A stretch of 64,000 nt of DNA from Mytilus californianus (Eukaryota). Below are positions 3,522 to 64,000 of the stretch, piece after piece (the first letter of the stretch is position 1; every line of letters starts with the position of its first letter). The stretch is from the NCBI RefSeq assembly GCF_021869535.1, contig NW_026262723.1, positions 63,922,001-63,986,000 of the forward strand. The letters are read 5' to 3'. A model generated the notes under the pieces. That model was given only the letters and a program-made list of their open reading frames with translations. It was not told the origin of the DNA and made no database searches. The translations under genes and the position numbers were made by a program.

Positions 3522-3701
3522 TTAATTCATAAGTTTCCAAATATGTTTAGCGACATCTTTTGCGGTCTTCTTCAGATCACTTATTTCAAAGTCAATATCA
3601 GTCTGAAATCTATCCACACTTCCCTGGACACTGTATGTCATAAATGCCTTGGAAAAAGCAATTCGGTTCTCTGTTTTAATTGATAAAGGGTCGTACTCAA
3701 C
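3522..3701 (-). CDS. G1 exon 6 (terminal)
   Basis: tacag|GTT; VEYDPLSIKTENRIAFSKAFMTYSVQGSVDRFQTDIDFEISDLKKTAKDVAKHIWKLMN*; homologous to the terminal exons of G2-G4. Confidence 0.9.
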   Translation of the reverse strand, partial: VEYDPLSIKTENRIAFSKAFMTYSVQGSVDRFQTDIDFEISDLKKTAKDVAKHIWKLMN

Positions 3702-6700
3702 CTGTAATTACAAATTCATAATAATTATCATGCATGTAAAAAAAATTTGACAAGTCAATTTGTTTAAATTCAAATATAATGAAATCTATTTATTGCATGA
3801 TAGTATAAACCATGGTCGCCTAAGAGGCAGGATGACCAAGTAGTTTATATACCATGCCATAGTGGAAATATTTAAAGAGCGATTTTTCGCGTTTTTTTTG
3901 TTGCACTCGTGAAATTTTTCAAATATTTTTGCAAGTATATCCATAAAAAGAATTGTATTCAGACTAAGAATACCCTTTGCTGTTGAAGCAAGTCGTTAAT
4001 AATATATGTTTTATTGTAAATTTGTAATAAAGGATAGCATAAACAGAGACACATAGATGAACTTTAGGACATTGGGTCGTTGTGAAATATCCTTATAAAA
4101 ATAAAACCCACAAAAATATATAGAAAAGGGGGGGGGCAATGTGAAACGATCGCCATAAAAACGAAATGATGATGAGCTTGAAGCTATGATATATTTCACT
4201 ACGTTTTCATGGTAGGCTGTATTTCTTTCTATTCTATTTTTTTATCCTATATGCTTGATGAACATGGGAACTGGTTGGTTCACAGAATACTTCATCAGAA
4301 ATATAACTTACAAACCGAAGACGGTGTTTGTAAATTATTAACTTCTGAACCTTAAACTTCTTTCTGAAACAATGAATTAATGAAATTTGATATATCAAAG
4401 AACACATATTATTATTAAGATAAACAGCATAATTACTTTTGTTATGAGTTGGCTTTGGATGGTATTTATATAAAGTCCTTGTAAGTATTTGACATGCTCC
4501 AGGGTATTTCGTTGATTGTATATTATACCTTCTCCGCAAACTGTAAAAAAATGTGGACATATTTTTTGGGATGGTACTTTTAAGGGACCAAGAAGTTGAT
4601 GAAAATTTTGATGCAACTACGTTGGAATAGATCAACCAATATTAAGTAACCTTTATAGTGTTCAGTTTATAATTATTTTTTTTAAACTTTTTTGGGTGGA
4701 AGTATTGCATTCGACAAATGTCTTTTTTAGTCTTAAAGTATTTTTTAATTACTTTCTCATCGGCATGTACATGTACCCAACATTCTCTTTTTTCATACTA
4801 AACATATGTTTCGTTCATATTCTGAAATTGATTCGGGCATTGTAAGTGGTGTGGTTGAACTGGCCATGATTGAATAAGTGCAATTTCTCAGTCAATACAT
4901 TATGTTCATAAATTTAAGATTCAATCACTTAACCAAAGTTGACCTAAGTACCCTTTGATTCTTCTATGTTGACATTCTTTAATCAAAACATATAGCTCTA
5001 CGTGAATGTATAATCCTCGACTTTTCAGACGTTCCTGATGTAGTGAATTTAGAATTGTTCTGAACGCATGCAGTGAAATTTAGAATTGTTCCGAACGCAT
5101 TTACATATTTACTTTGATTTTCAAACCAGGGCAGTCCAACATTTACCGCAAAGAAGGATGTTTTTCCTTCAGATGGTACAATTATTAAATGCTACAGCCA
5201 TACATCTACAAATATTTTTAGCGCGATCATGACTTAATTCGGTATATTACAGGTAATTACCTATTGCTAGAATAGTCATTGTGTCATGTGACAGTCGATC
5301 AATTTTACCACAAACCGTACACTGGTCGTCACAGTCACGTTTCTCCACAGACACAGAACGCTTTCCAAATATACCTATAAGATCAAAAGATAATTGTTAA
5401 ATAAGTCGGCAATAACAGCGCTGTTCCTTTGCCTTTTGTGTGTTTTTTGCTGTGCATGTACTGATTTTGTGTCATGGATGGATACCCATATACTTGTTTT
5501 TCTTTTCTTATTTTTACAGACTATAATATTGAAATTGTTTGTTTACGACAAAAATCTCCACATAAGATCTAAATGACAACAACTGCAATCAAGAGTTCTT
5601 TCTTTTTCAGTTACTTATAAATGTTAGTAGCATAAAACTTCTATATTATGTAGATGTGTTGTACAATGTGGATACATTTGATTTTTTTCAAAGATATTCG
5701 CAGTGTCTTCTTCATTTTACCAGGAAAAAGATATCCAAAGCCAGTAAGAACAACACAAAAAACAAATGAACAATTATATTAGTCGTCAGAGATTAACAGA
5801 TGTAGAAACTGAACCAGACGCTCATTTTTACATTAAACAGATACAACGCAACAAGGATTTGTTAGTTCAATGAAAATGTATGCGCCAAAATCTTGTTTTG
5901 CTGATGATATTTTGGTTTATCGATTATGGGTTTCAATATAATACATAAAAAATGGTCCACATTTATCATTTAAGGGCAATAATTTCGATAAAGAGTCGAC
6001 TGAAGGTTTCTCACATTTTACTCATTTGCAGATCGTGTCTTGCTGATCATTTTTGCAATTTGAGTTTTTCTCTTATCTAAAACAGCAAACAAAAATAAGT
6101 CAAATGCCCGTCTGTTTATTCCTAATAGGAGTTATTGCCCTTCAAATACGGTTTTCACGATTTTTGATTTGCCTATGTCTATAATATCGAAGGCTATAGT
6201 ATAAAGAAATAAACTTAATGGGCAAAAATGAGCAGCTTGAAAAATCTACAAATAAGTCTAATGGCTGAAATTATCAGTCGACCCCCTTTGGAGTTATTGC
6301 CCTTCAGTGACAAGTATTACCTTTTTTTTATGTTTTTGATGAAAACTGTGTAAAGGAGACTTTTTATGCATGACAAGTTGTAAGCCCTTGTGAGAAATCG
6401 TTTTGAGCATGACTAGTTACATGTATAAACCTTTGTAAGAAATATGTAATAGTTATACACCGAGGGATAGGTGTGTCTGGATAAGAAACCCCGTCGGCCG
6501 GAGGCCGGAGGGGTTTCTTATCCAGACACACCGTATCCCGAGTAGTATAACTAACTTACACCCCATTCTAAACCCTATATTTGTTAACATTGATTATTAA
6601 ATGAAAAAAAAAAAAAAAACGATAGCATATTTATTGATAATATCAAACCATGATTTATAAGAATATTTTTTTTTGTTACATGAAACCCCACTAGTAACCT

Positions 6701-11537: not shown

Positions 11538-11744
11538 CTTAACAGTTGTACAAAGTAAATGTATATACGATAATAAGTGGTAATTCTTATCTCTCCGGAC
11601 TCTCTAGAGTTTAACAGTTTATCAGGGAAATTACATAATGTGGTCAGTTGGTGTCGAATTGAACGAATCTACCATTCTATAGAAATTTATGGCTGAGATA
11701 ACAATTACGCAATAAGCTGATAATCAGTTACTATAAATGCATTC

Positions 11745-15331: not shown

Positions 15332-15920
15332 TTTCATTGGAATTACATGAGTTTGTTCCTTTCGGATATCTTGAGTTTAGAAACCAAATATTAAAGATAT
15401 AAACTAATGTTTATAAGTTAGAACTTTCAAATACTGGCTGAAATCCGTTCATATGTTTGAGGGAAATGTTACTAGAATACGACTGTAGAACAGTCATAAT
15501 TTAATAATATTTTCATTTCAATGCAAAATAAATATTTAGTTAGTTGACCATACATTTAAATCAAAATTTAAATAACAAAGGCAGTTATAATTATATTGTA
15601 TGTAAAACTGGCAATAAACAATATCAAATATATTGGAAACTAAATATCATCCTAACCACTTAAAATACAATTGGTTGAAGAAAAGGACAGTAAAAAAATT
15701 GTGTTGAACTTCAATGTATTTCTAAGAGGACTGTAAACTTATGACATCGATTAACGCCTTTAACAAAACTCCAGATGACCATACTAGCCATTGCCATTTA
15801 AAATAAGATTGATGAGGATTACAATTGCCAGCTGTCTGTTTAAATCAATTGCAGATACATATAAGTAGTGCTTTTTTGGATGAATGCGAAAAAAAAACAA
15901 ATGTTAAGGAATCTGAATTT

Positions 15921-16094
15921 TTATTTCTTCAAAATTTGATGAGCAACGCTCTTTGCTGTTGCAGTTATATCTGTAATTTTCAAATCTGTGCTAGAGTGTA
16001 AACGGACGGTTTGTCCATAGAGGGTGTATGTTACAAAATTATTTGTAAAGGAGACACCACCAACTGTTTTAATTGAAGTTGGGTCATACTCAAC
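15921..16094 (-). CDS. G2 exon 6
   Basis: ttgcag|GTT; VEYDPTSIKTVGGVSFTNNFVTYTLYGQTVRLHSSTDLKITDITATAKSVAHQILKK*. Confidence 0.9.
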   Translation of the reverse strand, partial: VEYDPTSIKTVGGVSFTNNFVTYTLYGQTVRLHSSTDLKITDITATAKSVAHQILKK

Positions 16095-19000
16095 CTGCAA
16101 AAGAATATAAAGAAGAATAAATTATGTTGAATTATTAGATCTGTTAAAATAACTGTCCACCATAATTATGCATATCAAAAGATAGATTTTAATCATGATT
16201 CTTTTTCGGGGATGAGGGGAGGGGGGATTTTTTACCCAAATTTAGAACTCATGTCATGGCATAAATTACGAGAATAGATGCAAGATCAAATCAAATCAGA
16301 TGTGAGATAACCCAGAGCAAACCGTATTTTATTTTGGACTTTGCTCTACCGAATGAAAAAGTACCGGTATATGGCATTGCACGTTGTACTTTAATTTGTT
16401 AAGAGCCTTTAACAGTTATGTAACCTAAACATGTACGTCAGTTACCATACATGTTTTCGGCTTTTTCATTTAACATATATTTACCTTAGATACGATATGG
16501 TTTGTGAGGGTAGTGTTGTATAGAGATCTTAGATATGCAATGGTTTCAATAGCATTCTTTTGACTGGAAATTGTATTTGCTCCACAAACTGGAAATAGAT
16601 AAAATAAATGTTGTTTACAGCCTACTAGTATAATACTTACTTTTAAAGTGTTATCGTTATATACTTTCGCTTTCTACTTTTTTCTCCAATATATTCAGAT
16701 AAGGAAATGCGGCATGACTGTCAAAGAGACAATTATCCACCAAGACAAAAAAGATTTGTGGAAAAGGCTATTGTTTGAACTTTGTACATTTTCCAATTAA
16801 TTATTGTGAAGCCTATTCGAAGAGATATACAATTTGAAAGTATTCACTTACAAATCTTTTGTAAGATAGAAACAAGGATTGTCATAACATAGACTAGCTG
16901 TCTATACGGTATTGGTTTTGCTCATTGTTGAAGGCAATACGTTGACCTATAGTTATTAACTTCTATGTCATTTGGTCTCTGGTGGAAAGTTGTTATACCA
17001 CATATTGCTATTTTTATATAGATGAAATAATTACCTGATTGTAAAACTTCTTCTTTTGTGTGTTTCTTGATATCAAGTTTATCACACACTGGGCATGACT
17101 GTACACAACGTTTACCGAATATATCTAAAAAAAGGAACAGATTTCAAATTTCTTTCATACCTTAGTACGAAACATTTATTCATTGTGTTATGAATACTTC
17201 ATTACTAATTATTCAAAATTTATTTTCAAACTAATTTCAACATGCGTCTACAACAAAAACCCATTAAGCAAAATCAACGGAAAAATATACTATGAAACTA
17301 TTAAGTAAAGTAATGGCAAAGGGTCGTATTCTCTATGAACCTAGTGAGGTGTGTTAAAATTATGAAATGTTTAACCCTAAAAATCTTTATGTTAAATAAG
17401 TTATTATTTGTTTGTAATAATTGTTGATTGCATCAGAATCACAGGCAGCGGTATGCATAGAATAGACTCTCCTTTTGAGAATATAAACCATAAATCGTGA
17501 TTTTAAAGGCTTATATTGCTTTTCTTTATATTGTTTTTCTCTCAAAAAATTATTGCAAGGTATATTCAATGGTTTCTTGAAAAATGTTTAATCTCTCCAA
17601 TTGCATGTTTATCTCTTGCACTTCATTAATATAACCATGAAATGTATAAGTATAACTCACGACCGAGTGTATTTCCTATCGAGTGTCCTACATTCTTGAC
17701 TCCATCCACGAGTTTGTTACCAAGATCCGTAAGGGAACCACCTATCGAGTCTAATCCTCCTCCTAGTTGGCTAGACAGACCTGTAAATTCTGACCCAAGC
17801 CCATTCAAAAGGTCTGTTGTGCCACTTCCTAGACCGTTTACCAGATCAGTAGTGCCAGATGCCAAGCTGTTGCCGAGATCTGCGAATTTCTTTCCAAGAC
17901 TTTCAAATCCAGCACCTATCGTATCCAAAGTTTTTGTTACGCCATCTCTCAAACCATTGCCAATATTTTTAGAAACGCTTCCAAGGTCTTTGACAAATTC
18001 GCCTGCTTCGCCTCCAAGAAATTTGGTAGTGGATGACAATTGTGATCCAATAGATTTTACAAATTCTCCTGCAGCAAGAACTGGTTTGAGGGCCTCTGTT
18101 CCAACAGCCACCAAAATAGCTTCATAAACAGGGGGTGGCTGTCTAAGAAATTGTCAAAATATCATAGATTTTGGAAAATACTAAAAATAAATAGAAATAC
18201 ACTTTAAAAAGATATATGAATGTTTGATGTCTTATTTACGTAAGTGAACTTAAAACAACTATTTTATTCATAATACAAATCCCAGAAAGTATGCTTCATC
18301 TGTATTTTCAACACTCAGTGACTAAAGAGATGAATCACTCTGTTGTTATTTTATTTTTAAGATATTAACATACAGTCTACAATATACCGAGAACTCGTGA
18401 GATGACGGAACCTATTCTCTATGCGCATGAAGTTTCGGTTTTTTAAGTTATAAGTCATGTTAAAGTTTGAAGTTTGAGTGTTTTCAGTTATGATTTATGT
18501 TAAACATGAAGGGTAGGTGTTTTAAGTTTTAAATATGCTAAAACATGAGGTAATAATAAAATCTTATCTGTAGCTCATGGCGTTTAGATTCTACAAAAAA
18601 AAATCATTAAATACTAGACTCATAATATAATCTAGTACGTCAAACACGCATTTCGCCTACATAAGTGTACATTTGTATGAATTTAACGGTATTTCTAAAC
18701 AAGCTAAAACAAATTAAATCAGGCAAAGAAATTAGGCATCGAGTCTTACTCTGCACAAGGCATGAAACTGATCTTACTCATATAGGGGTTCACACAAACA
18801 CTACGTATCTGTAGATCTTATATAAGTTACTTCTTTTAAGTTCTGTTCTTAACTTTTAATATTGAGATGATATTGAATTAGGCTGACCATGTTAAGTGCA
18901 TTACTAATTATTCTAGAGGGCCGTATGCCTTTGCAGTAACTGAATCATGACAACAATGTTTCATTGGATAGCTATAGGTGGCTTGTTGTAAGTCAATTTT

Positions 19001-22000
19001 TTAATCCTTCCGATTTTAAATTTGTAATCACCCCTTGTTTGTTTTAAAGGGTTCGTGTAACTCTTGTCTTAGCTATAAGTGTTGTTCTCTGTGATTTTTG
19101 ATTTTTCAAAGTATGTTTTTTTATAACGAAACAGTCTCGGCTATCCATTGTCATGAAAAACAAGCTTTAATTTTAGATTTTCACATTCGGTCAAGTTTCA
19201 GGGTTAGAAAATTTTACATGACCGATTGATTAGAATTTTGTAAAAGAGTCTATTAACAATCCGTTATTGCGTGATGTTTGATCCCTTTATATAACTTGTC
19301 AACGTATTTTATTGAAGTAACATGACGGGTGTCAAATTTGGAATAGGATCTGCCTTCCTGAGATCACCTCTGGTACCGATATTTGCAGGGGTTCATGTTG
19401 CTCGGTCTTTAGTTTTCTATGTTGTGCTTTGTATACTGTTGTTTGTCTTCGGGTCATTTTTTGCCATGGCATTATCGACTTATAAGTTTGAATATCCATT
19501 TTGTATCTTTCGCCTCTCTTTTAATGGCATTAAAAATCAACCAAACCCCATTTCACATTGTTTGACACATTAGACTACTTTTTAAAATCACAAACCGACG
19601 TTGGTTATGTTTTGATAATGGTTTATACAAAATTTTAATACGTGTCTACTAGAACGACAAAAGATGGAGATTTGTTCATTTCTATGACAGTAATGTTCAT
19701 TTCATAATTCGAAAAAATAATGTTGATTAAATTCAAACATTTTGACTTTCGGTATATTTTTTACTTCATATTACCAGATTTTAATGGAATTTTGTATAAC
19801 AACACATAACAAGGTATATAGTATTACTGATTTTTCAAGGAAACATTTGTTTCCCTACCAAATTTTTCATTGCATTTATTGTTGTGACCAATTTTTTTAT
19901 GTGTCGCAGCAATGACAGGAGCTCGTTCCTAAATCAGTAAAATTAAAATGAGAGGTTACAACAAACGATAAAAAACTCACGGGACACACAAATCTTGATT
20001 ACAAGCCTTACAGCTGTCGATAGAACCGTTGATTTTCACTTCACAAGACTTGGACAACTGCTTTTGTTGTACTGCTGTTTTGTTGATTTGTTCTACGATC
20101 ATTATAAGAATTTCCCGTCTAACTTCAATATCAAGCTCTGAAAAAATAAAAAAAAACTTTTGTTTGAATAACCTTGCACCTGTATGCTTATATAAAATTT
20201 ATATTTATGATATTTCTTTTGGGAGAGTCAAAAGCAGGAGGATGCCATTAGATTCAAAACCGAAAGTCACAGAAAGATAAACAACGCCGTGAACAATAGA
20301 AATAAGACGAAAACACGAAACAAGAATTACAAAACGACCAAGAAATCTTTATATTTAGCATCACAATACCGACAGAAATCGGTGTCAGAATTTTCTGCTC
20401 CACTAATGACACTCTATGTGTTACTCTTTTCAAAATCCGTAAATGAATCATAAATGAAAATAAAACTATATCAATGTCATTCGTTCGAAGCGCTTTTCTT
20501 AATTTCCCTTCAAAAGGAACGATCAAATTCAAACCTTTGCAAGCCAAGGTCCATACATAATAATCATGAGAATATAATCCAGACCGGCCACAATGCATCA
20601 TACGGTAGCCGATTGCTAAAATTTTCTAATTCAATCCTATTAGTCAGACTTGTTCACATTTATAATGCTATAACGAGACAAAGAAGCATCGAACGGTTTA
20701 GATGTTTTGCAAGGATTCATGAAAGCAATTATAAATTTAAATTATGATGCAGCTATAAAACGTAATCATTCATAAAAAAGTAAATGACAATATGGTTGTA
20801 TGGAAAGATAAACTACATTTGACAGAATTTCTTTTATATTGTGTCAAATGTAGTTTATATTGCGCTTTCTTTGTAGAACACATTGAAAAAATGTATCTCC
20901 TATTTTCACCATAGATGCTGTGCAGAATTATTATATTTTGTTCCGAGTATACATGCAAAAAGAACATTTATGTATAAGATATAGTCTTCTCGTATCTGAT
21001 ATGCCTCAGCCTATATATAATTTACATAGAAGTGATAAATGATTATTTTATCTTGTCTAATGTGTTCTTAAAATAACATTGATAAAACAGGAATAGTGTC
21101 ATTGTCTGAAATTTGCCAGATGCAGTAACACTTTCAAAAGATGTTTAAATTTATAGGTATAAATTTGAAATGAAATCGGAATTATGTCTTTTTTCTGTCA
21201 TAAAATTGATACCCCCTTACAGCTTTTGTATGGCAATATGGATCACTGTACTATCTTTTCTTCTTCTAGTTAAATTGCAACGTTTTGCTGATAACTGATA
21301 TATATAATAATAATACTTGTATGTAAGTCACTATAAAGGATGAATAACGATAGAAATTTGAAATAAAATATGAGCTCTTACAAAATTCTTTCAGAAAAAG
21401 ATAAATTTGGGTCAATGAACTCGTTTTCTTGCTTCATAACAATATAGGGAAAACGGAAGACGTATTCTTCCTTAGGCGACAATACTAACAATTTCTAAAT
21501 TTACCACTTTTATAATAAAAACTTGGAAAAAATGATACATTCTTGTTCTGTTTTAGAAATTGTAGTCACCATCTTCGAACGGAGCTTGTTTATGGTTTCC
21601 ATGTCTACCGTCATTTTACATCAAATTTATGAAAATTTGGATGCCTTTTCAAATAATTCTAAAGAAAATATTTCATTGTGTTTCCAAATTTATAAGAAAA
21701 TATGTTATACTATTACATCCAATCGCAGCGCTCCTAAGTTGACTTCCTTTACGTACCTGCCTTGGGTGCACAAAAGGTCAACCTAAAGCAGGGAAAATGT
21801 AATACTACTTTAGATACTGTTTTTTCTCTTTTAACAATATCCCTAAGTTATCTCTCCTTATAAATCAATCAAAAATACAAAGTTTACGTTAGATGAAACC
21901 TTATGAATTTACGCATTCAAGAGAGGCGGAAGATACCAAACTCATAAGTTGAAGACAGTGTGGCAACGTCATGATATAAAAAAAAAAACTAAAGACTGAG

Positions 22001-44862: not shown

Positions 44863-47850
44863 AAAATTGAGAATGGAAATGGGGAATGTGTCAAAGAGAC
44901 AACAACCCGACCATAGAACAGACAACAGCAGAAGGTCACCAACAGGTCTTCAATGCAGCGAGAAATTCCTGCACCCGGAGGCGTCCTTCAGCCGGCCCCT
45001 AAACAAATATATATACTAGTTCAGTGATAATGAACGCCATACTAAACTCCAAATTGTACACAAGAAACTAAAATAAAAATAATACAAGACTAACAAAGGC
45101 TAGAGGCTCCTGACTTGGGACAGGCGCAGAAATGCGGCGGGGTTAAACATGTTTATGAGATCTCAACCCTCCCCCTATACCTCTAGCCAATGTAGAAAAG
45201 TAAACGCATAAAAATACGCACATTAAAATTCAGTTCAAGAGAAGTCCGAGTCTGATGTCAGAAGATGTAACCAAAGAAAATAAACAAAATGACAATAATA
45301 CATAAATAACAACAGACTACTAGCAGTTAACTGACATGCCAGCTCCAGACTTCAATTAAACTGATTGAAAGATTATGTCTTCATCATATGAATATCAGGC
45401 ACAATCCTTCCCGTTAGGGGTTTAGTATCATATCATCATAACATATATGAGAAGAACATAACCCGTGTCATGCCAACAACTGGTTTTTAAATAAATGTGT
45501 TTAGTGCCGATGCAAAGACCCTATAAGTGAATCAATATTAACGCCAAAATATGCAATCTTTAATGACCTGACAACAGTATCGTAACTATATCCCTTCTTA
45601 ATAAGTCTATTTAAAGGTTTTGTTAGCTTCAGAGGTGAATACTGACATTTTTGTGCTTTATAAAGAATATTTCCATAAAAAATTGGATGTGAAATACCTG
45701 AACGTATCAGAAGTCTGCATTTTGAGCTATATTTACGAATGATGTCCTTATACCGATGATAAAATTTAGTAAATGTTTTGACTAGTTTGTGATATCGAAA
45801 ACCCTGGTGTAATAATTTTTCAGTAATACATAAATTTCTCTCGTTAAAATCTAAAACATTGTTACATACACGAGCGAATCGTACAAGTTGAGATATATAA
45901 ACACCGTAAGATGGTGACAAGGGAACGTCACCATCTAAAAATGGATAATTAACGATAGGAAATGAAAAATCATCTCTTTTATCATATATTTTAGTATTAA
46001 GCTTTCCATTAATGATACAGATATCAAGATCGAGGAAAGGGCAGTGGTCATTGTTAGTATTAGCTTTATTTAAAGTAAGTTCAACAGGATAAATTTCTTT
46101 AGTATACATACTGAAGTCGTCATTATTGAGGGCCAAAATATCATCCAAATATCTAAAAGTATTATTAAATTTGTGTATCAGATGTTGTTTCGATGGGTCT
46201 TTGCTGATTTTTGTCATAAATTGTAACTCATAGCAATACAAAAAAAGGTCCGCAATAAGTGGTGCACAGTTAGTCTCCATTGGAATTCCGATAACCTGAC
46301 GATATACGGAATCTCCAAAGCGAACAAAAATGTTATCTAGTAAAAATTCAAGGGCATATATAGTATCAAAGCATGTCCAATCGACATAGTTTTTTTGTTT
46401 ATTGCTACTAAAAAATGACCTAAAAGAGTTTGAACATATATATTCACATTCTGACTTTTTAAATACCCATTTAATTAGGTGTGTGAATTTTTTCTTAATG
46501 AGAATGTGAGGCAATGTGGTATATAGGGTAGACAAATCAAAACTTTGAACAGATTCAAAATCACCAATATATGCATGTAATTTATCAAGTACTTCCAACG
46601 AGTTCTTGACACTCCAAAAGTAATTAATTCCACTATTTTCGAAGGCCTTATTTCAACAATTTATTATCAGGTTTTTGATTGTACCAAGTGTACTGGTAAG
46701 AAGAATAGACAATTTAGTAGTGGAACAATGGCTTGAAGACGAAATGAATCATTCTATATTTGTAAGGTGTTTTGTGTAGCTTCGGAAGCCAATACATAGT
46801 TGGGACTTTCATTGTATTTGGTTCTGCTTGTAAAGCGGTAGCTAAAAGTTTATGTTTGTTACAGATGTCATTTTCTGAAAATGGAGTCAGTTGGAATGTT
46901 GGTGAATTGGTGATTTCTTTTTTCAGAACCTCAATGTAAAATTTACGTCAAACAATAATAATATTATTAGCAGCTTTATCGGCCGGGACAAAAACAAATT
47001 CCTTGGCTAGTTCTTTTAGTTTATGTTTGATACGAGAAATAGGTTTATTGTGGTTATTGTTAAGAGTAAAATGTTCTTTAAAATGTTGAATACGTATATC
47101 AACTATGTTCATTACTGAATTAAAAAAAGAGTCCAAAGATTTTTTGTCAGCTTTTTCCCGTTTTATCCATTTCAAACAGCAAGTATGGAGTGAGTCGTGG
47201 ATGATATTACGACACTCTTCCAATTAATAATTGACGGGGGACGATATTTAGGTCCTTTACTGAGGAATGATTTTAACTCTCGGTCTTGAACGATGTTAAG
47301 ATCTCCTGTTATAACATGGGAAATGGGTCCATAAATGTATTCGGAATTACTGCAATTACATGAAGTAGGTGTATTTTCACTGATATTAACATCTTTACAC
47401 AATTGGCTATAATTAAACACAAATTTCCGGGTAGATTTCTTGTAAATATAACAAATAAGAGAGAGCTCAGTATTATCAAAATATCCCGGAATTTGTTCTT
47501 TAACAGTATGGTCGTTAAAAATACCGGCAATATTTACAAAATCAAAACCTTTATTGACATTCTTTATTTTAATAAACTGTTTTTTATGATCTTCAGGGCG
47601 ATCAATTTTGGGAAACAGTTTAGAATAACAATATGCCATTATAATTTGAACGATTTCATACTTAGGACTGCTATACGAAATTGTGTTGCAATCCTCTAAA
47701 ATTTTATTTAACTTATTAACCGGTAATGAACAGAGCTTTGTTAACAGATAATGTCTGCCGTTGTTTTTTGAAATAGAAATCAGGTCCGAAATATTGGTAT
47801 GATTGTTCAAAGCAAAAAACAATAAATAGATAAATATTTAGTAATCTTTA
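44863..47850 (-). mobile_element. Penelope-like retroelement, 5'-truncated and frameshifted; RT ORF 46598-45501
   Basis: RT motifs SFDLSTLYTTLPH, GIPMETNCAP, FRYLDDI, PFLDLDI, YDKRDDFSFPIVNYPFL..YGVYISQLVRFAR. Upstream fragments 47822-47172 (GPISHVITGDL..SKGPKYR) and 47223-46948 (VPADKAANN) in shifted frames. No GIY-YIG after the RT. Confidence 0.88.
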
Positions 47851-47899
47851 GTATAAAGACGTCATACATAGTCTGAGAAACGCATGACCTTGTGCAATG

Positions 47900-48480
47900 C
47901 CAAAATATAAGTACTTGATATAGACAGGATGTAGGAACATAATTTTTCATCAATGGAAAGCAATACATATTAAGGTATCTTTTAATTCACTCCCAAAAAA
48001 ATCAATGCTATTACCGATCAAACTATATTCAAAGATCTACACTGTTAAAATAAAATTCTTTACGATCAACTGTATTCAAAGTATCAGTAAGTTTGCATTG
48101 ATCGTATTTGAATTGACGTGCTTAATTAACAACATGGCTAAGTGGCTAAAGGAACATCACCTTCCAAAAAAAAAGGAATATCAAAAAAGGGAACGAAAAA
48201 TCGAATCTTTTGTTAATGTTTGTTTTGATTTTCCCGTGTGAAACTGAAATATCCAAATCTAGAATAGGCTTATTACTAATGCTAGTATTAGATTTATATA
48301 AAGTAAGTTCCATTGATAAAATTTCTGCAGAATGATTAGAGAATTCTGGATTATTCAAAGCAAAAATATCATTAAGATAACGGTAAATGTTATTGAATTT
48401 ATCAATAAGATTAAATTTAGACGGATCTTTACTGAGTTTAGCCATAATCTGTGATTCATAACAATACAAAAACATCATCT
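47900..48480 (-). mobile_element. Decayed PLE RT fragment (different subfamily)
   Basis: ORF 48478-48146 FLYCYESQIMAKLSKDPSK..YRYLNDIFALNN..LDLDI is homologous to ORF 45501-46598. Confidence 0.8.
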
Positions 48481-48507
48481 CATCACAGCTCCAGTAAGTA
48501 AAGCATG

Positions 48508-52164: not shown

Positions 52165-52195
<31 letters not shown>

Positions 52196-52196
<1 letters not shown>

Positions 52197-53150
52197 TATG
52201 TCTTCATCATATGAAATACAATCACAGTCCCTTCTGATGGGGGTTTAGCATCATGCCATCATAATTTATCCGAGAGAGAAGAACATAACCTAATCATACA
52301 AACAACTGGCTTTAGAATAAATGTGGTTATTTCCGACGCTTTGAGAGAATCAATATTAATAAAAAAAAAAACACCATATTTAATTAATGACTTGACAATA
52401 GTGTCGCAACTATATCCCTTGTGAATCAGTCTGTTTAGAAATTTGATTAGGTTTTGAGATGAATGACGACATTTTTGTACTTTTTATAGAATATTACCAT
52501 AAAAGGTGGGATGTGAAATATCAGTACGTTTAAGATGTCTGCATGTTGATTTATGATTACAAATGATGTCCTTGTACGATGATAAGATTTAGTGAAAGTT
52601 TTGACAAGTTTGTGATATCGAAAACTACGACATTTTTGTGCTTTGAATAGAATATTACGATAAAAGATGGGATGTGAAATACCTGAACGTATAAGATGTC
52701 GTCACGTTGATTTATTTTTTCGAATGATGTCCGTGTACTGATGATAAGATTTAATTAAAGGTTTGAACTGTTTTTTATATCGAAAACCCTGGTGATATAA
52801 GTTTTCAGTTATACAGAGGTTTCGTTCGTTAAAATCAAATAGTTGTTAAATACACGAGTGGATCAAAAAAATTTCAGATATATAAACGCCATATGAGGAT
52901 GCCAAAGCAACGTCGCCATCTAAAAACAGATAATTTACAATAGAAAATAAAAAATCATCTGTTTTATTGTAATTTTAGTGTTAAACTTTCCGTTATGGAT
53001 AGAAATTTGAAGATCCAGGAAAAAGCAGTGTTCATTTTAAGTATTAGCTTTATTTGTAGTAAGTGTAAAAGGATAAATGTCTTTAGTGTACATACTGAAG
53101 GCGTCATTATTGAGAGCGAAATTGTCATCCAACTATCTAAAATCTGTTAT
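52196..53150 (-). mobile_element. Decayed PLE RT C-terminal half + 3' UTR start, with an internal tandem duplication of about 180 bp
   Basis: Aligns by eye to 45376-46170; segment 52460-52620 repeated at 52620-52790; (TG)n at about 52172-52196. Confidence 0.8.
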
Positions 53151-55469
53151 TAAGATAGTATGGTTGTTTTCCAGGCCGTGACACCTCGTTCTTGATATGA
53201 CATTAAAATCACATGACAGGTAACATGGGTAATGCATGCATAAAGAAGACGTAATTCAAGAAGACGCATATTTATTATATTCGTTCGGATTATTCAGCCA
53301 CATAAGCCTGGACTTCCGGAAGACTGACAAGCAGTGTGTACAGCATATACTTGTGCTTATCACTTCCGACCACAATTTTATTTCAACGATAGGTTTCCAG
53401 TTTCTTAATACATCGAGTTACATAAGGAAGCGACAGCTTACTTACGGGGAAGCATATTATTTTTTCACATAATGACTTGATGTTAAGAATCACATCACTT
53501 GTGAACAGAAATATTGATAATCATCACATTGACACTAGTTCAATATCTGTCTGTTCTTTGTTTGGATTCTCCTTAGTCATGCTAGTGGTAGCTACTTGGT
53601 TTCTGTTTTGTCTGCTTTGATTTTGATGACAGATATTTGATATTCTCTGTTCAAATGTCTTACAGCTTTTCAAACGGAAAGGTGCAGGTTCCCCGGAAAA
53701 GACATATATGTTCGCTGGCTGTTGCTAACTCGATGACGTTTACCATGTTGCTAAAAATTTCACTGAAATAGTTCACATTTTCAAGAAACTACATAATTTT
53801 GTATACACTTATTTCAGTAAAATTTCAAATCTAAACAAGTTTCATCAGCAAATTTATGCAGTTCAAATATATTTACAAAATTATACAAAACTTTATAATT
53901 ACTTTCAACGTGGACCATATCTCATTTTACATGCAAAACGAAGACACTGTTTATTTAAAACAATTTTGTATAATGTCTAAAAGAGAGGCGAAAGATACCA
54001 AGGGAACATTCAAACTCATAAGTCGAAAATAAACTGACAACCTCCGCCCTGGTTAAAAAAGAAACAGACAAACAGACAAACAACAGTACACAATATACAG
54101 CATAGAAAACTAAAGAAAACTAAAAATATTGTTTAGTTTATTTTTCATATCATTTTTAAAACATTCGGCTAAACACTTCTGTTGATATTTTCATGGACAT
54201 TCTGTAAATGCCAGAGATTACAAACGACCCAGGAAGTCTGAATTGTTTTCCCATTTTACCAGTTTCGAATTTTACAAATGATATCTTGACCTCTACTTTT
54301 CCGTCTATAAAGAGGACACTTTTTGCATATTCCATCAGAAAGCGAAAAAACTTCATACTGGTCTGTGGTATCACTAAAGGATCAATGAGTGATTGTCGAA
54401 AACAAGTTCATGATATTAGAGTATACATGTAATAACTGGGCTGATATATAGTGGAGCCTATATATATAATAACCGGGCTGATATGTAAAAAAAAGTTATA
54501 TTCTGTATTTATCCTGCAATCGACCTTTCTACTATACAAATACAGGTTGAAATATAAAATGACGCAATAATAGTACAGTAGACGTTTATAGTCTCCTGGT
54601 GTCCTGCTTCTGTTTGGAGCGACCGGTTATATTCAAATTGATGTTTTCGTCACAATTCAATTGCGGGTCCTCATCGCGGTCCGCGTTTACGTCATGTTGT
54701 TTTCATTAAGAAACAAATTCAACGATTTCGAATTGAAACAAAATATACGTTTAAGCTCAATGTTGAATTGCAGGATAAAAACAATATTCGCGCATTATAG
54801 AAAAAATACATAATTTATTTGTACTCGCTACGAAACAGGAGAAAAGCACGGCGAGTCTATCTTTTCTCTCTGTTACTAAAACTCGTAAAATAAATATTAG
54901 ATTTTTCTACACTGTCCGAATATTGTATACACTGTATATACAGTGTCTTGACATCGATATTCCTCATGTACTAACACATTTTTTGTCGAAGATTATATTA
55001 AAGGCATCTACCTGGGTTTGAAAGACACAATTTTTTTTTCATTTTAGTTTCGTTTTTGCCTCACCACACTTGATAATTACTCACTATTAAATTAAATTGG
55101 AATTGATTATCAAATTTACTGACAAAATTCTACTTGCATTCACATCATTATGAAATAAAAACACCTAACCACCAATGTTTAATTAAATAAACAAATAAAC
55201 CTGTGACATTTTTTCCTCCAGATAATTAAAATACGACCATTTTTTTCTTTAAAAATGATTTTATATGAACGTTATCCTGCAAAAAACTAGATGACGAATT
55301 GTTATATCTTTGCACTGTACTTAAAAATAATTTAAGATGACAAATAACATAGAAGAATAAATATCTAAAATGTAAAAAGAGTATCCAAGATTCATAAATG
55401 TGTTATTTACTATAAGAGACTAGTGATGCAAATTTTGTATCCTTCGTAGGCTTATAGCAGTACATCAAA

Positions 55470-56412
55470 AAGTAAAATATCAAAAATACCGAACTCCAAG
55501 GAAAATTTGAAACAGAAAGTCACTTATCAGATGGCAAAATAAAAAGCTCAAACACATCAAACGAATGGAAAAACAACTGTCATATTCCTGACTTGGTACA
55601 GGCATTTCCTTATGTAGAAAATGGTGGATTATACCTGGTCTTATAGCTTGCTAAACCTTCCTCTTGTATGACAGTCATATAGCATTTCAATATATTGACA
55701 ACAATGTGTGAGCAAAACAAACACACATAATAGGTACAAATGTCAAAAATTGTGATACAGCAGGCAACATTGTGTTATAATCTTAATCCCTATAAAACGA
55801 ATAACTATCTTAACATAGAAAAAAGAAAATGGCATATAGACACTATACAGACGAAGTACAAAAGCAAAAATGAAAGACAAAAATACAAAAATGACTAAAG
55901 CACAATAACACAATGGCAAGATGTATAAATACCTAGCCACGCCAAAATTAAACACCAAAATTGTAAAAGTCAGAATATACAAAGACCAATAAAAAGAACA
56001 CTATAACACGTGATTGAGAGGATTAATAACGTCAGTACCTAGAATCTATACTTCAAGACCATCATGTATTATTTGTAAAGTTGATACGGAATATTTGTCA
56101 ACAAGGTCTTGATATCTTCGGATGAACTTTTTTAGAAAAAGGAAGAGACGTTTTTTGACATAACCCTGGTTCATCAACTTTCTGCTCACACACTGATGAC
56201 GTTTTATAAAGTCTGAGTAGAGCTGCAAGCTCTTGAATACCGAATGAATTAGGAGATGAATATCCCATATGCAGGTGAAGTTGGTATATTGGTGTTAAGG
56301 TGGCATAAATTTTTAATATAGATTCTGATACTGAGATGACCACCGATGTCAAAATCGAGGTATAAGTCTTCAAATAAGGCGGATGAAGCCGTGTCGGTTG
56401 TTTCTTTAATTT
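55470..56412 (-). mobile_element. Decayed PLE RT C-terminus + 3' UTR (another subfamily)
   Basis: EIKETTDTASSA..YLDFD..IPTSPAYGIFIS..IRYSRAC..DFIKRHQCVSRKLMNQGY across frames 56460-56046. Confidence 0.8.
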
Positions 56413-59400
56413 CTTGCAACGGGTTGATTCAATAAACCTATAAATGTAGAAGGATGACAAATCATGCTTAAAAATTGTTCAGGAAAGGTTAGCACATATT
56501 TAAAGCTAGAATAGCCATTTCGGTGATTGAACTTCACTTTTTTGTTTTAATGGACAACTGACAAATGCCATGAGTATTATTTTAACACCATCTAATTATC
56601 ATACCTCATCAAAAAGCTACTTGCCATCACATAGCGAGATATATCGCTCACTCATATTAGTCAATCTTCAGGCTCTATTTGACAGTAGAAAGGCGAATCA
56701 ATCAAAGTTTGCAATTTCAAAGAGAGGAACATTAACAATAATACCACATCGTACTATTTATATAAAAACGTATTTTACGGAATTTTAAAATCATAACTAA
56801 TGAAGCTAGGTGAAATATATCAGGAACCTGACTTGTTGGTTGCGGAGAAATATGTGACGACAATTTCATAGTATGTGCATGTTCAACATATCTTTATAAT
56901 CAAGTTGGCCATAGACCACTATTAATTTTCCTATCATTTCTTTATTACGTTTTTTCACATTAAAAACAAATTCACCTGCCGATTCGCAAAAGTTTTGGTA
57001 TGTGTAATGTACAGTACAAGTCTCACATTATATCCAACATTTAGGAAAATCCCAGCTGTGCAGGTAATTAATTTAGCCAAAACACATCCATACTGGTATG
57101 GACAAGTCAAGAGATGTTCCGAAAACTATAAATGTTTTTTTTTTTATAAAATAAATCTTTTATTGCACATTTCTCTGCTGTTTTTACAACTTACTCGACT
57201 CACAGTATTCGGTCGAGTATCCCTGTAAATTAGTTTAACCAGGGAGATTACACAGTACAAATTATATATATCAAATATGGTTAGTTATACAATACATTGA
57301 TTTTGACAATTTGTTTTTGAAGTCTTTGTTATGTTACGTAATTACGGAAATTGTACTATCTATTGTCCGATATTGTTTATAATTTAGTCGTTGACCTAAA
57401 CCTTGATCAAAATATTTCCCGTGAAAGTTGAGATGATGATGTCGGATGATTAAAGAATACCACGTGTAATGATCATGAGAGCAGAAGGTTCTCAAATAAG
57501 TTTTTCTAATGGTGAGTTTTGGTAATATTTCCATTTTTTTATAATAAATTTATAGAAAGAATCATGATTTATCCTAGAATATCAAAGATTTTTCCAGTCA
57601 GTAGACAGTACAGGGTCAATGTTCAATAAGCATGTTGTACAGATAATCATTGATTATTCATCACATTTAAACACACACATGTGTCATCTTAAAATTTCGC
57701 AGTTGTTTACATTTCATATAAGTTATCCTACATGATATGTATAATAATACTGAAAAAAGAACATCTACAATATAAACATGGTTATTATATATTTTTATAA
57801 ACATCATTCTATATAAATGTTACCTGCAACTGGCCTAATAACTCAATCCCACTACTGAATAGTTAAAATAAAGAATAAAAAAATTATTTTAACTCTTTCT
57901 TTCATTTCCACTCTATAAAAACTAAGAAATGAATCAGGAAGGCAGAGAATAAAAATCAAGAAGAAATAGACTATAATAACAAGGAACTATATTCGTCTCG
58001 GGACAGTATTCTAAACACATCTTTTCGGCAAACAGGAAGTATAACATAGAAGGAACTGCAAACGTGTTGCAAGGTATGGCATTACGAAATGAAACTGTGT
58101 ACCATATATCAAGATAGTAGGCATTGAATCTGTCGACAAAAATGCGTCAACAATGTGTTTCGGGAAAATAAACGCACACACGTACGTAAGAACGGACAGA
58201 AATAAAACCAATATACCCCTATCTTTTGGAAGGGGTATAGATATACTCTGTTAAAATGTACATTCTTTCTACTTACTTGATAGTATTATTTTCTCCTGTT
58301 TATTCTTGTAAATATTGAGTCGATCACATTGCGGACAATGCTTCCGCACATTGTTTTTTTTTTAGATGTCTGATTGATCGTTTACCAAAAATACCTGAAA
58401 AAGAACGTGATATTTATTTCAGCTTTTCAAATTTAGTTTTAGTTTTCATGAAATGTAACTGATTAAGTTACGTTTAGACGAAGGTACCTTTTCGAAGATA
58501 TACCATCAGCATTGAATGAAACTCATGTTATTATAATTCAAAATAAGCAACTGGAGGGGTATACTAAGTGGCTATTATCTGGCCCCTAAAATTTCAAAAA
58601 AGTAGTAAAATTCTCCAATGCCTAAAAATCATCTTAGTTCCATTGATAAATGAATAGGGTTATGTAATGTGGAAACTGTCAAACAAAAAATGGTAGTCGT
58701 TATCTCATAATTCAGAATGAACTTGTCCTAATTTACACATTTGTCTCTCTGTTAATGTCTGTTGTACACGAAGTGTTTGGCCAATTTGGACATGACTCAA
58801 GGCCTCCGAAAAATGATAGTTTAAGCACATTTTTATATCCAGTAGCAATCTGTATTCTTGTGACCTTCAATTTAACCCCTTAGCTTGAGTTGGGGTTACG
58901 CATAAACTGGGCGTGTTCATTTTTTAAAATGAAAAGAATGTCAACATTGAAAATGAAATAATGGTCAACCATTTTGCTGACTGATTCAATCCACGAAGAC
59001 TCATTCTGATGCAGGTTAAAACGATGATTAACATATTTTTTAACCTATAATATGAAATCAAACAGACCTAGAAAAATCCAACTGCACGTGTTCACTATTT
59101 CTTTATACATGTATCTATATTTATGTTTATATCGGGTTATATGACCGTCGGCAGTCTTTGGTGGTTACCTCGATGATTAATTAAATGGCGTCTAGACTAC
59201 AATACACACGAAATGCTGATACATATTATCGAATCCATGCATCGTAAATTGTTTATTTTAGACTTTTTATCATTTGGATATACGTTTTAGTATGTTATGA
59301 ATAGGATATGAGAACTTTAGTCAAATCGGTGAACATGAATTTGACAGCTAATACCCCTTTAAACATTTTATCGTATTTTTAAAATTGTATTTGACTGAAT

Positions 59401-59431
59401 GTATTGCTATGTACAGTAATTAATATATTGT

Positions 59432-59724
59432 AAAACATGTTTAACCCCGCCGCATTTTTGCGCCTGTCCGAGTCAGGAACCTCTGGCTTTTGTTAGTCCT
59501 GTATGTCTTTTTTTTAATTTTGGTTCATTTATATGTTTTGGAGTTTAGTGTGACGTCCATTTTCGCTGAACTAGCTTACATTGTTGTTAGGAAGCCAGCT
59601 AAAGCCCGCCTCCGGGTGTGGGATTTTATCGCTGTGTTGAAGACCCATTGGTGGCTTGGGCTGTTTTCTGCTCTTTCGTCGGGTTGTTGTCTCTTTGACG
59701 CATTCCCCGTTTCCATTCTCAATT
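59432..59724 (+). mobile_element. PLE 3' terminal fragment
   Basis: AACATGTTTAACCCCGCCGCATTTTTGCGCCTGTCC..TTCCATTCTCAATT, as at 31718-32010. Confidence 0.85.
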
Positions 59725-61329
59725 GTATTATTAATCAATATTTCCCTAATTATCGAATATTGATTTTTGCAAATTTGGTAATGTCTGTTGAAAAACAATA
59801 TTGAGCTATTGTTGTGCTATAATGATACCTTTTAAGTGGTATCACAATCTTACTTGTAATGCCACCCTCAGTTTTTCTACCAGTATTCTCAGCAACTTTT
59901 CCAATTGTTTTACCAGTGTCAACAATACCTTTTTTAACCTTATTAGCCTGTTCTTCAGCTTGTTTTATCATCCATTAATTTTCCAAGTGACATCTCCGTA
60001 CCAATATTAATTAAGTTTTCTATCTCGATTTTTTACCACATATCCGAACTTAACAGCTTTTGCAACAGGTTTGTTAACTACGTTCAGCAGTCCGTGGATC
60101 ATATGTGCGTTTCTGGTGGTTTTTAGATATTTTTAATAATCTCCTTGAAATAATAAGTATAATTATAATCGCTTTAATGACTATTGGATCAGTAAAATTT
60201 AATTAATTATAATAGAAAAATATCAATTGTTCATAGATCACTATTTTTCCAGATTCATTTTTTACACTCTTTTATCTTTTATCGCAGTATACCATACTGT
60301 AATTGACATATTTAATAACTTTTACGACCTGACTTTATAGATAATTTTATTATTCTAAAAAAAACGTTGCAACTCCCTTAGGCTTTAGGCAAAGATGATC
60401 TTTGAATCGATTTTGATTGATATGAATAGGCTTTTTTTTGTTATGATGCTTCGAAATTCTTTTTACTTTCTATTACTTTCATTTGATTGTTGCTGAAATT
60501 GGTAGACTTCCGTTCCGGCATGATTAAAATGATATCTGTTAACTGTTACTTTTGTTTATATTTTTTTTTATTGTGCTAAATCTTTCACGCAAAGTTGTCC
60601 TATTGATATTTGATTCTCTGGTTTTAGTGTCTCCTTAACAGTTTTGAATAAGGTTCATCACAAACATCATCGATTTGAGTGTACTCAATGAATATTACTC
60701 CAGGAACAGGTATCATGCGCTATCAAACTTATTACTCAACTCTTTTAAGGTGCATTGTATATTTTTATGACGAAGACGTGACGTAATAATAATGATGATG
60801 TATATATCAGTTTTGGAGTTTTTTGTTTTTGTTTTTATAGCTACATCTGGTTACTGGTGCACTGAAATTGTAGTCATGATCGTTCCAAACAACTTTCACA
60901 GTCACTAAAATCATCTGGAAGCTTAAATACATAAAGAGTAGCTGTATATGTTATATAACTTCAAATACACATGAATAGATGTATAATAATATACATTTGT
61001 ATTGACATGTAAAATTGTATACTAACGCGTGTAAATGTCAAAACACAATATACTAAAACATTTTCTAATTTATGAGAATTTATTCAGACAATATAATACT
61101 TCAGATGACTTGTCATAAATATAAATCATTCACAATGATTACTTCGTCTTACTGAGGAGATGTGCATCTGTATAATACCTACTGATCATCCCATATACAT
61201 TTATTAAGCAGGGAGTGTGCATTATCTGGTATGGGCGATCGGGAATTATCCAGATAGTGAAAACAATGAAAAAATAAATCACTTTTAATGTGAAAATTAC
61301 AACACTTGTGTTGATAAGAGATATACGTA

Positions 61330-61739: not shown

Positions 61740-63664
61740 GGTGAATTTGTCCGTTAAATGCGTTAAAAAGTAAAGCCTCAGTCACAAATCAGGATTTTTA
61801 ATACCGTCCTGGAAAGGAACATTCCGATAAAAATGTGTTAAAAGTCGGATTAAGTTCCTGTGATTCGTGGCTCGAAAATTTGTAAAAACAAATATTGATT
61901 AAATCACGAAAACAATCAGATATTTTTCAGGAAACGTCCCTATTATACCGATAAAAATATACCATTCTAGATTATTGATAATAGTAGTCCGACTTTTTCA
62001 CATTTCGTGTCTTTGCACTGTCTGATCTCAAGCGCGAGCCATAATCGGCTATCTGTGACCGCCGTATTAACTACAATATTGAAGACAACTTAAGAATTAC
62101 TTAGATTGTCAAAGAGATTACAATGATATAACTAGTTTTTGTTTTACAATATTAAACTTTCTAAATTATATCAATTTCAAATCAGATGTCCTGAAACCAA
62201 TGAACAAAAAAAATAAATAATCTATCAAGTGTCCAGTTTTAAACTACTAGTACGTCAAATTTATTATATTCTTTTCAATCGTATTTAAGTTTGATTTATG
62301 TATAAACTTACATTGTTCCTCTTTTTTGATAAGTTTAATACTTTTATAGACTCGGAACGATGCAGTCTGAGAGTCTTTTTGTATATACACCTGTCGAATG
62401 TTGAATACCTATTTCATGTCACCCTCTAGATGTCTTTCGGTTACTATTTTTGCTGGTTTGCTTTCTCATTGACTTGTACCAATTTTTATTTATAACTGTT
62501 ATATACACTATCATGTGTTTTTCTTCATTAAATTGTATTTCAACCCACTAATACAATATTATTTTTTATTAACTATAGTAAGCACTTGTAAAGTAATCAC
62601 AAAAACCAATTTTGGAAGTGCACGTAGTAAAAATAACTCCTTTTTCCCACAAGAAACTGTACATCTGAAAAAAAAACATTTAGTTGTCTAGCAAAAATGG
62701 CGGGAGCCACAAGATACGTTTGCAGTTCCGGTTAAGTAATATAAAACAAAAAGACTCTAAAAACACAAAACATGCAACAAATGTAGTATTAGCTCAACTT
62801 TAGTTCACTCCAATAATGTAACTAAGTGTACTTAACCAGTCACAACCAACAAATTGTTCTAACACTATTAAATTCTCATAACCATGTTATTTAAGACGCC
62901 ATGTACGAACGCTGTTAACAGGATGTTTATTTGTGTTTTAGATATTATTCAATTAATATTCTATAAAAATTTCCTGAAGTAAAAAATTTACAGGAACATC
63001 AACCTAAAAAAATGTCAAATTTGATGAAATTTGCCTGCAGGCAGCGTTGTTTTGCACTGAATACCTTAAGTTTTAGATTAATCGTTTAATATGATTCTAT
63101 GAAAAGTGTAGAGTCTGTGAGTAAACGGTACTTGGGAAGTTTGTTACTCCTCGTTTTCAATACTATTAGCTATTCCTCGTATGCTCTAAAGTTGTGTCGG
63201 AGTCCGGCAGACCCAGTATAATATAAAGAGATATGGTATGATTGCAGATGAGACAACTAACCAGGAGAATCCATTTAACATAGGATTAGTAGGTCACAGT
63301 GATTGCTTTCAAAATTTTCACAAGTTTACAGCTCTTGGTTTCTCCGTACCATAGTAAAACTATATATCCTTTCTTGAATGGATCGTACATATAAAACGTT
63401 ACCTTCTGCAAAGTGTGTACGGTATAATCCATATTTTCTTTAAAATGCAACATATAAAAGACTACAATAATTAATTAATCTTTATTGCAAGTAAAACGTT
63501 AAATAAACTTTTAAATACAAGTAAACAAAACAAAAATTGGATAAATAAATATAACATACTAACAATTTCAACAAGTATATTCTAATACATCAACTACAAT
63601 TATATTGCTAAAACATTTTGTCATTTGATTGCACATTGTCATTCTTATATTACTTTAAATTGAC

Positions 63665-63874
63665 TACTGTAAATTCAGAAATTATTGCGTGCATTTATTA
63701 TTGCGATTTTGTCATTTTAGACTAAAATGCGATTCTAAGTTTTGCGATATTGAGACCAATCCTGTTTAATTCATATAAGATATTTCAAAATGCGAGTTTA
63801 AATTATTGCGATTATAACCCTGTCGCATTTTTCGCAATAATAAAAACATCGCAATAATTTCTGAATTTACAGTA
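63665..63874. mobile_element. MITE with perfect 25-bp TIRs and TA target duplication
   Basis: TACTGTAAATTCAGAAATTATTGCG ... CGCAATAATTTCTGAATTTACAGTA (TIR count includes the flanking TA); empty site TTGAC-TA-ATTGGTCT in the paralogous segment at about 37576-37590. Confidence 0.92.
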
Positions 63875-63893
63875 AATGGTCTAAACAGTAACT

Positions 63894-64000
63894 CTATAGC
63901 ATTTTATATATGATATCTTTTGATATTTTTATGGCCATGCCATCTATGTTGGAGATTTCAAAAAGTCCGGAAAACTGAAATCGTTTCTTGATTTTGTTAG
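63894..64000 (-). CDS. G6: 3' part of the terminal exon of a further G4-like paralog (continues beyond the window)
   Basis: NKIKKRFQFSGLFEISNIDGMAIKISKDIIYKML*; 25/34 identical to the G4 C-terminus with the same stop position. Confidence 0.8.
   Translation of the reverse strand, partial: NKIKKRFQFSGLFEISNIDGMAIKISKDIIYKML

Follow-up and report, generated by a model that had tools for sequence, protein, structure and literature searches.

What kind of protein is encoded by a tandem array of divergent six-exon genes on the minus strand of the Mytilus californianus genome, and does its layout have a counterpart among known proteins? The array lies on contig NW_026262723.1 (positions 63,922,001 to 63,986,000), in a stretch of 64,000 nucleotides (nt) that we refer to as the window. 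An earlier note on this DNA had proposed an old and unnamed family of processed secreted precursors, with a layout unlike that of the known mussel antimicrobial peptide precursors. We find that the four intact genes of the array, g1 to g4, are paralogs and belong to a bivalve family, so far unannotated, of predicted secreted glycoproteins. On balance, we favor the view that its members are secreted two-chain proteins, divergent from but similar to clusterin, with lipids or hydrophobic surfaces as their binding partners. The earlier interpretation thus stands where it held the family to be real, old, and unnamed, and gives way on the nature of the proteins, which are best read as divergent relatives in the manner of clusterin. 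Clusterin itself, an apolipoprotein that acts as an extracellular chaperone, has been studied intensively, and its gene ranks among the major risk genes for Alzheimer disease.

Four intact genes with one exon structure

Upon comparing all stop-to-stop open reading frames (ORFs) of the window against one another, and reading their flanks for splice sites, we obtained five families of exons, all of them short minus-strand ORFs, which recurred four to six times each in a constant order. Exon 1 was sought among upstream Met-initiated hydrophobic exons with a phase-1 donor at their end. The result was four intact six-exon genes (Table 1) that are arranged head-to-tail on the minus strand and contain no internal stop. 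All 20 introns of g1 to g4 display GT-AG borders, and their phases run 1, 2, 1, 1, 0 in each gene. Exon 5 measures 104 nt in all four genes, while exon 2 measures 157 nt in g1 to g3 and 166 nt in g4. The phases and exon lengths given in the earlier note were reproduced exactly, and its inventory of four six-exon genes, a pseudogene, and a partial sixth copy could be rebuilt from ORFs and splice sites.

We mapped four public runs on the g2 region (15850-20250; 4401 letters). In an oligo-dT metatranscriptome of seawater (X1), contigs connect position 16092 to 16483, 17124 to 17661, and 18142 to 19981, i.e., exons 6/5, 4/3, and 3/2 of g2 as predicted, and the loose end of an X1 contig past exon 2 (20137) matches exon 1, as predicted, over its final 14 nt. 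A second run (X2) likewise joins 18142 to 19981. Hence, four of the five predicted g2 junctions (1/2, 2/3, 3/4, and 5/6) were recovered in spliced contigs, with the 4/5 joint lying outside the coverage. In addition, a 1154-nt transcript contig holds an uninterrupted ORF for a 373-residue relative of the family. Plankton metatranscriptomes are the sole RNA evidence for the array genes, a signal that hints at gametes or larvae as its source but proves nothing.

Gene models from independent annotation agree with the array. Residues 93-387 of g1 are 100% identical to the M. californianus RefSeq protein XP_052068510.1 (P0014), and over the remaining exons and junctions g1 is collinear with a M. coruscus protein (P0074) that lacks the signal-peptide start. 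The product of g2 is 94% identical to, and collinear with, a M. trossulus protein of 372 residues (P0055). At that M. trossulus locus, which is syntenic with the array, head-to-tail genes for 380, 372, and 387 residues correspond to g3, g2, and g1 in that order, and exons 1-4 of g3 map onto the 380-residue gene upstream of the g2 ortholog at 71-86% identity, with coinciding starts. For g4, neither RNA evidence nor an external ortholog was retrieved, and its model therefore rests on the integrity of its ORFs and on the conserved splice phases. The comparison also reveals errors in the public annotation of three Mytilus species: the RefSeq isoform for g1 (XP_052068510.1) is missing exons 1-2 and opens with an internal Met, and the g2-type models of M. 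galloprovincialis and M. coruscus (P0056 and P0057) are chimeras with unrelated PHD-type or Mab-21-like sequence, one of them skipping exon 4.

An unannotated family across bivalves

Using a full HMMER scan with g2 exon 3 and a set of word-based searches, in which alignment-derived words gave mostly low-complexity candidates and words from the C-terminal region performed better, we found members in four species of Mytilus, in Pinctada, in oysters (Magallana/Crassostrea, Saccostrea, and Ostrea), and in the scallops Mizuhopecten, Pecten, Argopecten, and Ylistrum. Every database match was labeled "uncharacterized" or similar, and no retrieved member carried a precomputed Pfam domain on the family region. 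Literature searches by member accessions and locus names returned no name for the family, those combining clusterin with Crassostrea or Mytilus returned nothing relevant, and searches of the ESM Atlas by features and by shape returned nothing related. On these searches, the family is indeed unnamed, as had been supposed. A few other names surfaced along the way and were set aside: Collagen_mid, Senescence, and Suprabasin repeat gave sub-threshold, composition-driven Pfam matches on exons or full-length members, and weak PDB profile matches to triosephosphate isomerase, anti-sigma F factor (E 0.011), and cytochromes c were taken as chance.

The ortholog in the oyster Magallana angulata (L001:10001-13111) is a single-copy gene of 3.1 kb with unrelated genes as its neighbors, an NWD1-like WD40 gene on one side and an F-box/LRR gene on the other. 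Its splice sites were read from ORFs and flanks, at a locus that encodes the query protein inexactly. All five mussel intron positions and phases are present, along with one extra phase-1 intron inside the segment that corresponds to exon 3 of the mussel genes (hereafter, the cassette). Because the oyster gene is single-copy and shares these introns, the tandem expansion seems to be a feature of Mytilus, and the gene itself is older than the split of the three bivalve orders. The great age ascribed to the genes in the earlier note is thus borne out by members in mussels, oysters, pearl oyster, and scallops and by the intron positions and phases shared with the oyster gene.

Two cysteine clusters around a conserved dibasic site

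We read the conservation of motifs from an alignment of 17 members. The proteins consist, in order, of a signal peptide, a long N-terminal helix that ends in a ladder of Cys residues, the cassette, a dibasic site, a second Cys ladder, a helix that packs back on the first one, and a C-terminal domain. The hydrophobic N-terminus that we read from the sequence as a signal peptide is present in all four array genes. Eight Cys can be aligned in each mature protein, of which exon 2 encodes four, exon 4 three, and exon 5 the last, whereas identity among the paralogs outside these positions amounts to ~30%, in line with the earlier remark that the Cys are invariant and the rest diverged.

The spacing of these residues is characteristic. 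In Mytilus, the first cluster reads C-x10-C-x2-C-x4-C, of which the fourth Cys is absent in oysters and scallops, and the second reads C-x3-C-x2-C-x17-C, or, across the alignment, (C-x3-)C-x2-C-x15-to-17-C-G. Cys 4 and Cys 5 are both present in Mytilus and both missing in all oyster and scallop sequences, a joint loss that fits an antiparallel ladder in which these two form the innermost pair. An N-glycan sequon that lies between Cys 1 and Cys 2 is nearly invariant family-wide, and g1 to g4 all have it; a second sequon further upstream is kept in most members and absent in g4. The alignment further displays a conserved Y and the motif K-V-E-Y-D-P.

The exon 3/4 boundary is marked by a dibasic motif, usually F-G-[KR]-[KR], that every one of the 17 aligned sequences possesses, as do g1 to g4; the F-G pair is invariant across the 17 sequences and is followed by two to four basic residues. 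In g3 the cleavage motif is RRKR, and g4 displays two dibasic sites ahead of the second Cys cluster. At the exon 3/4 junction of g4 (39697-40170), the cassette ends in K-K, followed by a short stretch of Trp, Gly, Ile, and Lys and then by L-F-G-K-R; if the Lys-Lys were also cut, the product, judging from these residues, would be a short amidated amphipathic peptide.

Structural comparison with clusterin

Clusterin has been described as a vertebrate protein with five antiparallel disulfides, furin cleavage between its two Cys clusters, a coiled-coil core, disordered tails at the cut, and a C-terminal domain in which a three-stranded sheet is wrapped round a helix (PMC12527946). We compared this architecture with an AlphaFold2 model of the M. 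trossulus ortholog of g2 (pLDDT 76, pTM 0.71). In a Foldseek search against 350,542 PDB chains, the best matches of the model were three chains from crystal structures of human clusterin (7ZET/7ZEU; E 8.5e-3, probability 0.97). Among fold-cluster matches, A0A1S3HE14 and A0A7J7IUH2 are leads in the search for intermediates. Against 550,129 Swiss-Prot AlphaFold models, ranks 1 to 11 were all occupied by clusterin or clusterin-like protein 1, with alignments that ran end to end (residues 3-371 versus 2-439). An AlphaFold model of an oyster member, 30% identical to the mussel protein (pLDDT 69), likewise placed three clusterin chains first (E 1.4e-2), the next unrelated match being ten-fold weaker (0.15). 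For two members, clusterin is thus the top structural match, and its layout agrees with that of the array proteins, which therefore do have a precedent.

The agreement extends to individual elements. As modeled, the bivalve proteins appear to show the structural elements of clusterin in identical order, with a C-terminus predicted to form strands at 313-318, 334-340, and 343-348 plus a helix at 355-371, and with low pLDDT around the dibasic site (237-256). Clusterin (apolipoprotein J) and clusterin-like protein 1 share with the family secretion, N-glycan sequons, two Cys clusters with a basic site between them, and a flexible cut region; further points of agreement, on the predicted structures, are the long helical core, which is antiparallel, and the three-strand sheet with a helix at the C-terminus. 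The Cys of clusterin (7ZET_A) are spaced C-x10-C-x2-C-x4-C-x7-C and C-x9-C-x6-C-x2-C-x7-C. The first bivalve cluster thus equals the first three spacings of clusterin, and C-x2-C occurs in both second clusters. When family profiles were aligned by hhalign with three clusterin fragments, each checked as 100% identical to 7ZET_A, the bivalve C-x2-C was set on that of clusterin and the last Cys on the last Cys, with P ~0.1.

The proteins also depart from clusterin in ways that concern their middle part and their genes. The region between the bivalve clusters is one long amphipathic bundle, whereas clusterin has helices and short hydrophobic tails; and in Mytilus the genes are in tandem, with charges of the region from -5 to +43, and with no detectable sequence similarity to clusterin.

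The cassette as a predicted amphipathic helix bundle

The earlier note had called the cassette hypervariable, which did not hold up. The segment of ~150-165 residues can be aligned from mussel to oyster, with several invariant Gly and Leu, and the divergence of exon 3 does not stand out: across the four paralogs it has an identity of 0.28 (0.28-0.46 for the other exons), and between orthologs one of 0.93-0.95 (0.89-1.00 for the other exons). A swappable or hypervariable cassette was rejected on these grounds, as the rate of exon 3 does not exceed that of the other exons and it aligns across the family. What does vary is composition and net charge, which is slightly negative in g1 to g3 and strongly positive in g4 (Table 1). 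Exon 3 of g4 holds a 33-nt (11-codon) tandem repeat in 4.5 copies (40172-40321). On the plus strand, an ORF of 161 residues (17642-18127) lies exactly antisense to exon 3 of g2; it is most likely a by-product of the biased composition of that exon and not a gene.

Helical hydrophobic periodicity was detected in all four cassettes, above nearly all shuffles, and the cassette is predicted to fold as an amphipathic up-and-down helix bundle. Together with the hydrophobic N-termini and the conserved dibasic site, this periodicity agrees with the earlier description of secreted precursors with a convertase motif and an amphipathic middle. Among PDB sequences, the cassette profile matches ApoA-IV and apolipophorin-III (E 7.7e-5 to 4.8e-4), with tape-measure phage proteins and designed bundles scoring equally. 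No apolipoprotein family of Pfam passes, even at E 10 (ApoC-I, E 0.088 on one exon). Exchangeable apolipoproteins (ApoA-IV, the N-terminal domain of ApoE, and insect apolipophorin-III) resemble the cassette in amphipathic periodicity and in a helix bundle like that of the ApoE N-terminal domain, a likeness that may be one of periodicity or composition only; they differ in that the bivalve region is embedded in a disulfide-laddered scaffold. We take the cassette to work like an exchangeable apolipoprotein, rather than to belong to one of these families.

Proposed mode of action and alternative explanations

If the proteins are clusterin-like, a proprotein convertase would cut the precursor at the dibasic site in the secretory pathway, and antiparallel disulfides, four in Mytilus and three in oysters and scallops, would hold the two chains together. 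The cut would give the amphipathic region a free C-terminus, perhaps a Phe-amide. Its helix bundle would do the actual work of binding to lipid, to membranes, or to hydrophobic surfaces or clients that are exposed, while the clusterin-like scaffold would keep it soluble. The paralogs differ mainly in the charge of the amphipathic region, and g4 (+43) is a candidate membrane-active or antimicrobial variant that may attack microbial membranes.

We infer homology to clusterin, and a number of observations speak against this reading. The Foldseek E-values are only ~1e-2 and the TM-scores 0.19-0.26, and the mussel and oyster models share much of their alignment, so that the two fold searches are partly dependent. 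The Pfam Clusterin family (PF01093) gave no match for five full-length members even at E 10, and family profiles of exon 2, exon 6, the N-terminal and C-terminal regions, and the cassette found no clusterin chain among PDB sequences. In the hhalign comparison, the expected register was obtained for two of the three clusterin fragments, with P of 0.1-0.5, and the fragment of the C-terminal domain gave no match. Bivalve members would have four or three disulfides where clusterin has five, and their dibasic site abuts the second cluster, whereas that of clusterin lies ~57 residues before it. Last, an adult M. californianus RNA-seq run (X6, of which ~6% was read) contained no exon reads at the g2 region, its reads falling only on two high-copy intronic repeats in g2.

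The lack of significant sequence similarity to clusterin and the weakness of the structural scores would sit well with a family that is specific to lophotrochozoans and unrelated to clusterin, with a convergent layout, and whose products are precursors of the prohormone or antimicrobial peptide (AMP) kind, from which convertases release amphipathic cassette peptides, a view close to that of the earlier note. Precursors of amidated peptides typically carry a G-K-R motif like the one seen here, and g4 combines two dibasic sites with a +43 cassette that consists in part of 11-codon repeats. However, no conserved dibasic site lies N-terminal of the cassette, and a single cut would leave it on the first Cys cluster; for this reason, release of the cassette as a free peptide seems unlikely, and the disulfide ladder would probably keep it attached to the scaffold once the precursor has been cut, with the caveat that g4 contains numerous Lys-Lys pairs. 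The cassette, moreover, aligns from mussel to oyster and is conserved as the scaffold is, which is unusual for a spacer-and-peptide precursor, and clusterin came out on top in two libraries for two members with end-to-end alignment. Mussel AMP precursors (mytilin, myticin, defensin, and others) and amidated linear peptides do resemble the array proteins in their signal peptide, dibasic processing, and G-K-R motif, and in the strongly cationic, amphipathic cassette of g4, but the array proteins are ~370-390 residues long, with two Cys ladders, a folded C-terminal domain, and a cassette that is not flanked by sites on both sides. To our knowledge, the Cys pattern and gene structure of the array are unlike those of the known mussel AMP families. 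We regard a lophotrochozoan-specific origin as unlikely, though as a serious competitor to a clusterin-like family.

Far less probable is a kinship with soluble alpha-helical pore-forming toxins of the ClyA/AhlB/MakA kind, which have a long helical bundle and a small membrane-inserting beta element. Chains of ClyA, AhlB, SmhB, and MakA did appear in the Foldseek list (E 0.04-0.15), and the helices of the array proteins are amphipathic; yet these matches had probabilities of 0.1-0.44 and ranked below clusterin in both searches. A toxin fold would also leave the two Cys clusters, the conserved dibasic site, and the N-glycan sequons unexplained, and the beta element of the bivalve models is a C-terminal sheet on a helix, not a tongue in the middle of the bundle. 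That the models could be annotation artefacts or decaying pseudogenes without a product is the least credible of these explanations. One array copy is broken, the adult run is silent over the exons, and g4 is without RNA evidence or an external ortholog, but ORFs are intact and splice sites canonical throughout g1 to g4, conservation spans three bivalve orders and includes the intron phases, spliced g2 contigs occur in two runs, and the 1154-nt contig encodes its 373-residue relative without interruption. For g1 to g3, an artefact is already contradicted.

Other features of the window

The window is AT-rich (GC ~0.32) and contains no runs of N. Two further copies lie beyond g4, of which the fifth is broken and the sixth is represented by its 3' end (Table 1). 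In the fifth copy, a piece resembling exon 4 (58413-58278) is frameshifted, a piece resembling exon 6 (54335-54159) lacks the AG acceptor, and a weak match at 59971-59750 is a possible remnant of the cassette; exon 2 and exon 5 were sought by tblastn and frame reading, and neither was found there.

Table 1. Copies of the gene in the array; coordinates refer to the window, with position 1 as its first letter.
Copy	Coordinates	Strand	Product	Exons or parts	Cassette net charge	Remarks
g1	11537-3522	-	387 aa	11537-11429, 10858-10702, 10005-9506, 5374-5261, 4540-4437, 3701-3522	-4	
g2	22985-15921	-	372 aa	22985-22874, 20137-19981, 18142-17661, 17124-17035, 16588-16485, 16094-15921	-5	
g3	35960-26888	-	381 aa	35960-35837, 33785-33629, 31070-30616, 29271-29167, 28346-28243, 27088-26888	-2	
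g4	43036-37602	-	374 aa	43036-42949, 41905-41740, 40593-40127, 39813-39697, 39481-39378, 37784-37602	+43	
Broken fifth copy	54159-59971	-				Read by tblastn and frame reading
Sixth copy, 3' end	63897-64000	-		Last 34 exon-6 codons and stop, 63998-63897		74% identity to g4 exon 6, E 1e-12; cut by the window edge

The interval from g4 to the broken copy contains, within 45501-48478, a minus-strand ORF of 365 residues, with diverged partial copies at 48149-48478 and 52262-53146 and neighboring ORFs of 216 and 91 residues. This region looks like a mobile element, and a Pfam scan of it gave no family above threshold. Just downstream of g1, a minisatellite occupies 367-2932, in which units of 66/117 nt occur in ~20 copies and longer periods of 183, 234, and 417 nt are superimposed; the repeated PYDHALLIKAPFVLE ORFs on the plus strand arise from it. 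Two stretches within introns of g2, 16879-17025 and 19378-19524, are high-copy dispersed repeats, with a DNA-contig depth of ~800,000 (~40 nearby) and many chimeric joints between the two.

Implications

A protostome family with the layout of clusterin, and with clusterin as its best-matching fold, would, if true, move the origin of this scaffold back. A further-reaching conclusion is possible, but we hold it only tentatively and think it rather doubtful: clusterin would then not be a vertebrate invention, and bivalves, perhaps along with other lophotrochozoans, would hold true homologs that are unrecognizable by sequence and carry an apolipoprotein-like binding bundle. In some copies of the Mytilus array, this bundle would have become a polycationic module of 11-residue repeats, possibly amidated, that attacks membranes, so that a chaperone and apolipoprotein scaffold would have been re-used as an immune effector.

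Such a family would also offer natural variants that differ in the number of disulfides (three, four, or five), in where they are cleaved, and in the charge of the binding region, which ranges from acidic to +43; these could be used to test which part serves which function. On the reading of a divergent clusterin-like family, genes that are now listed as "uncharacterized" in mussels, oysters, and scallops gain a name and a testable function, and the cationic paralogs are flagged as candidate defense molecules.

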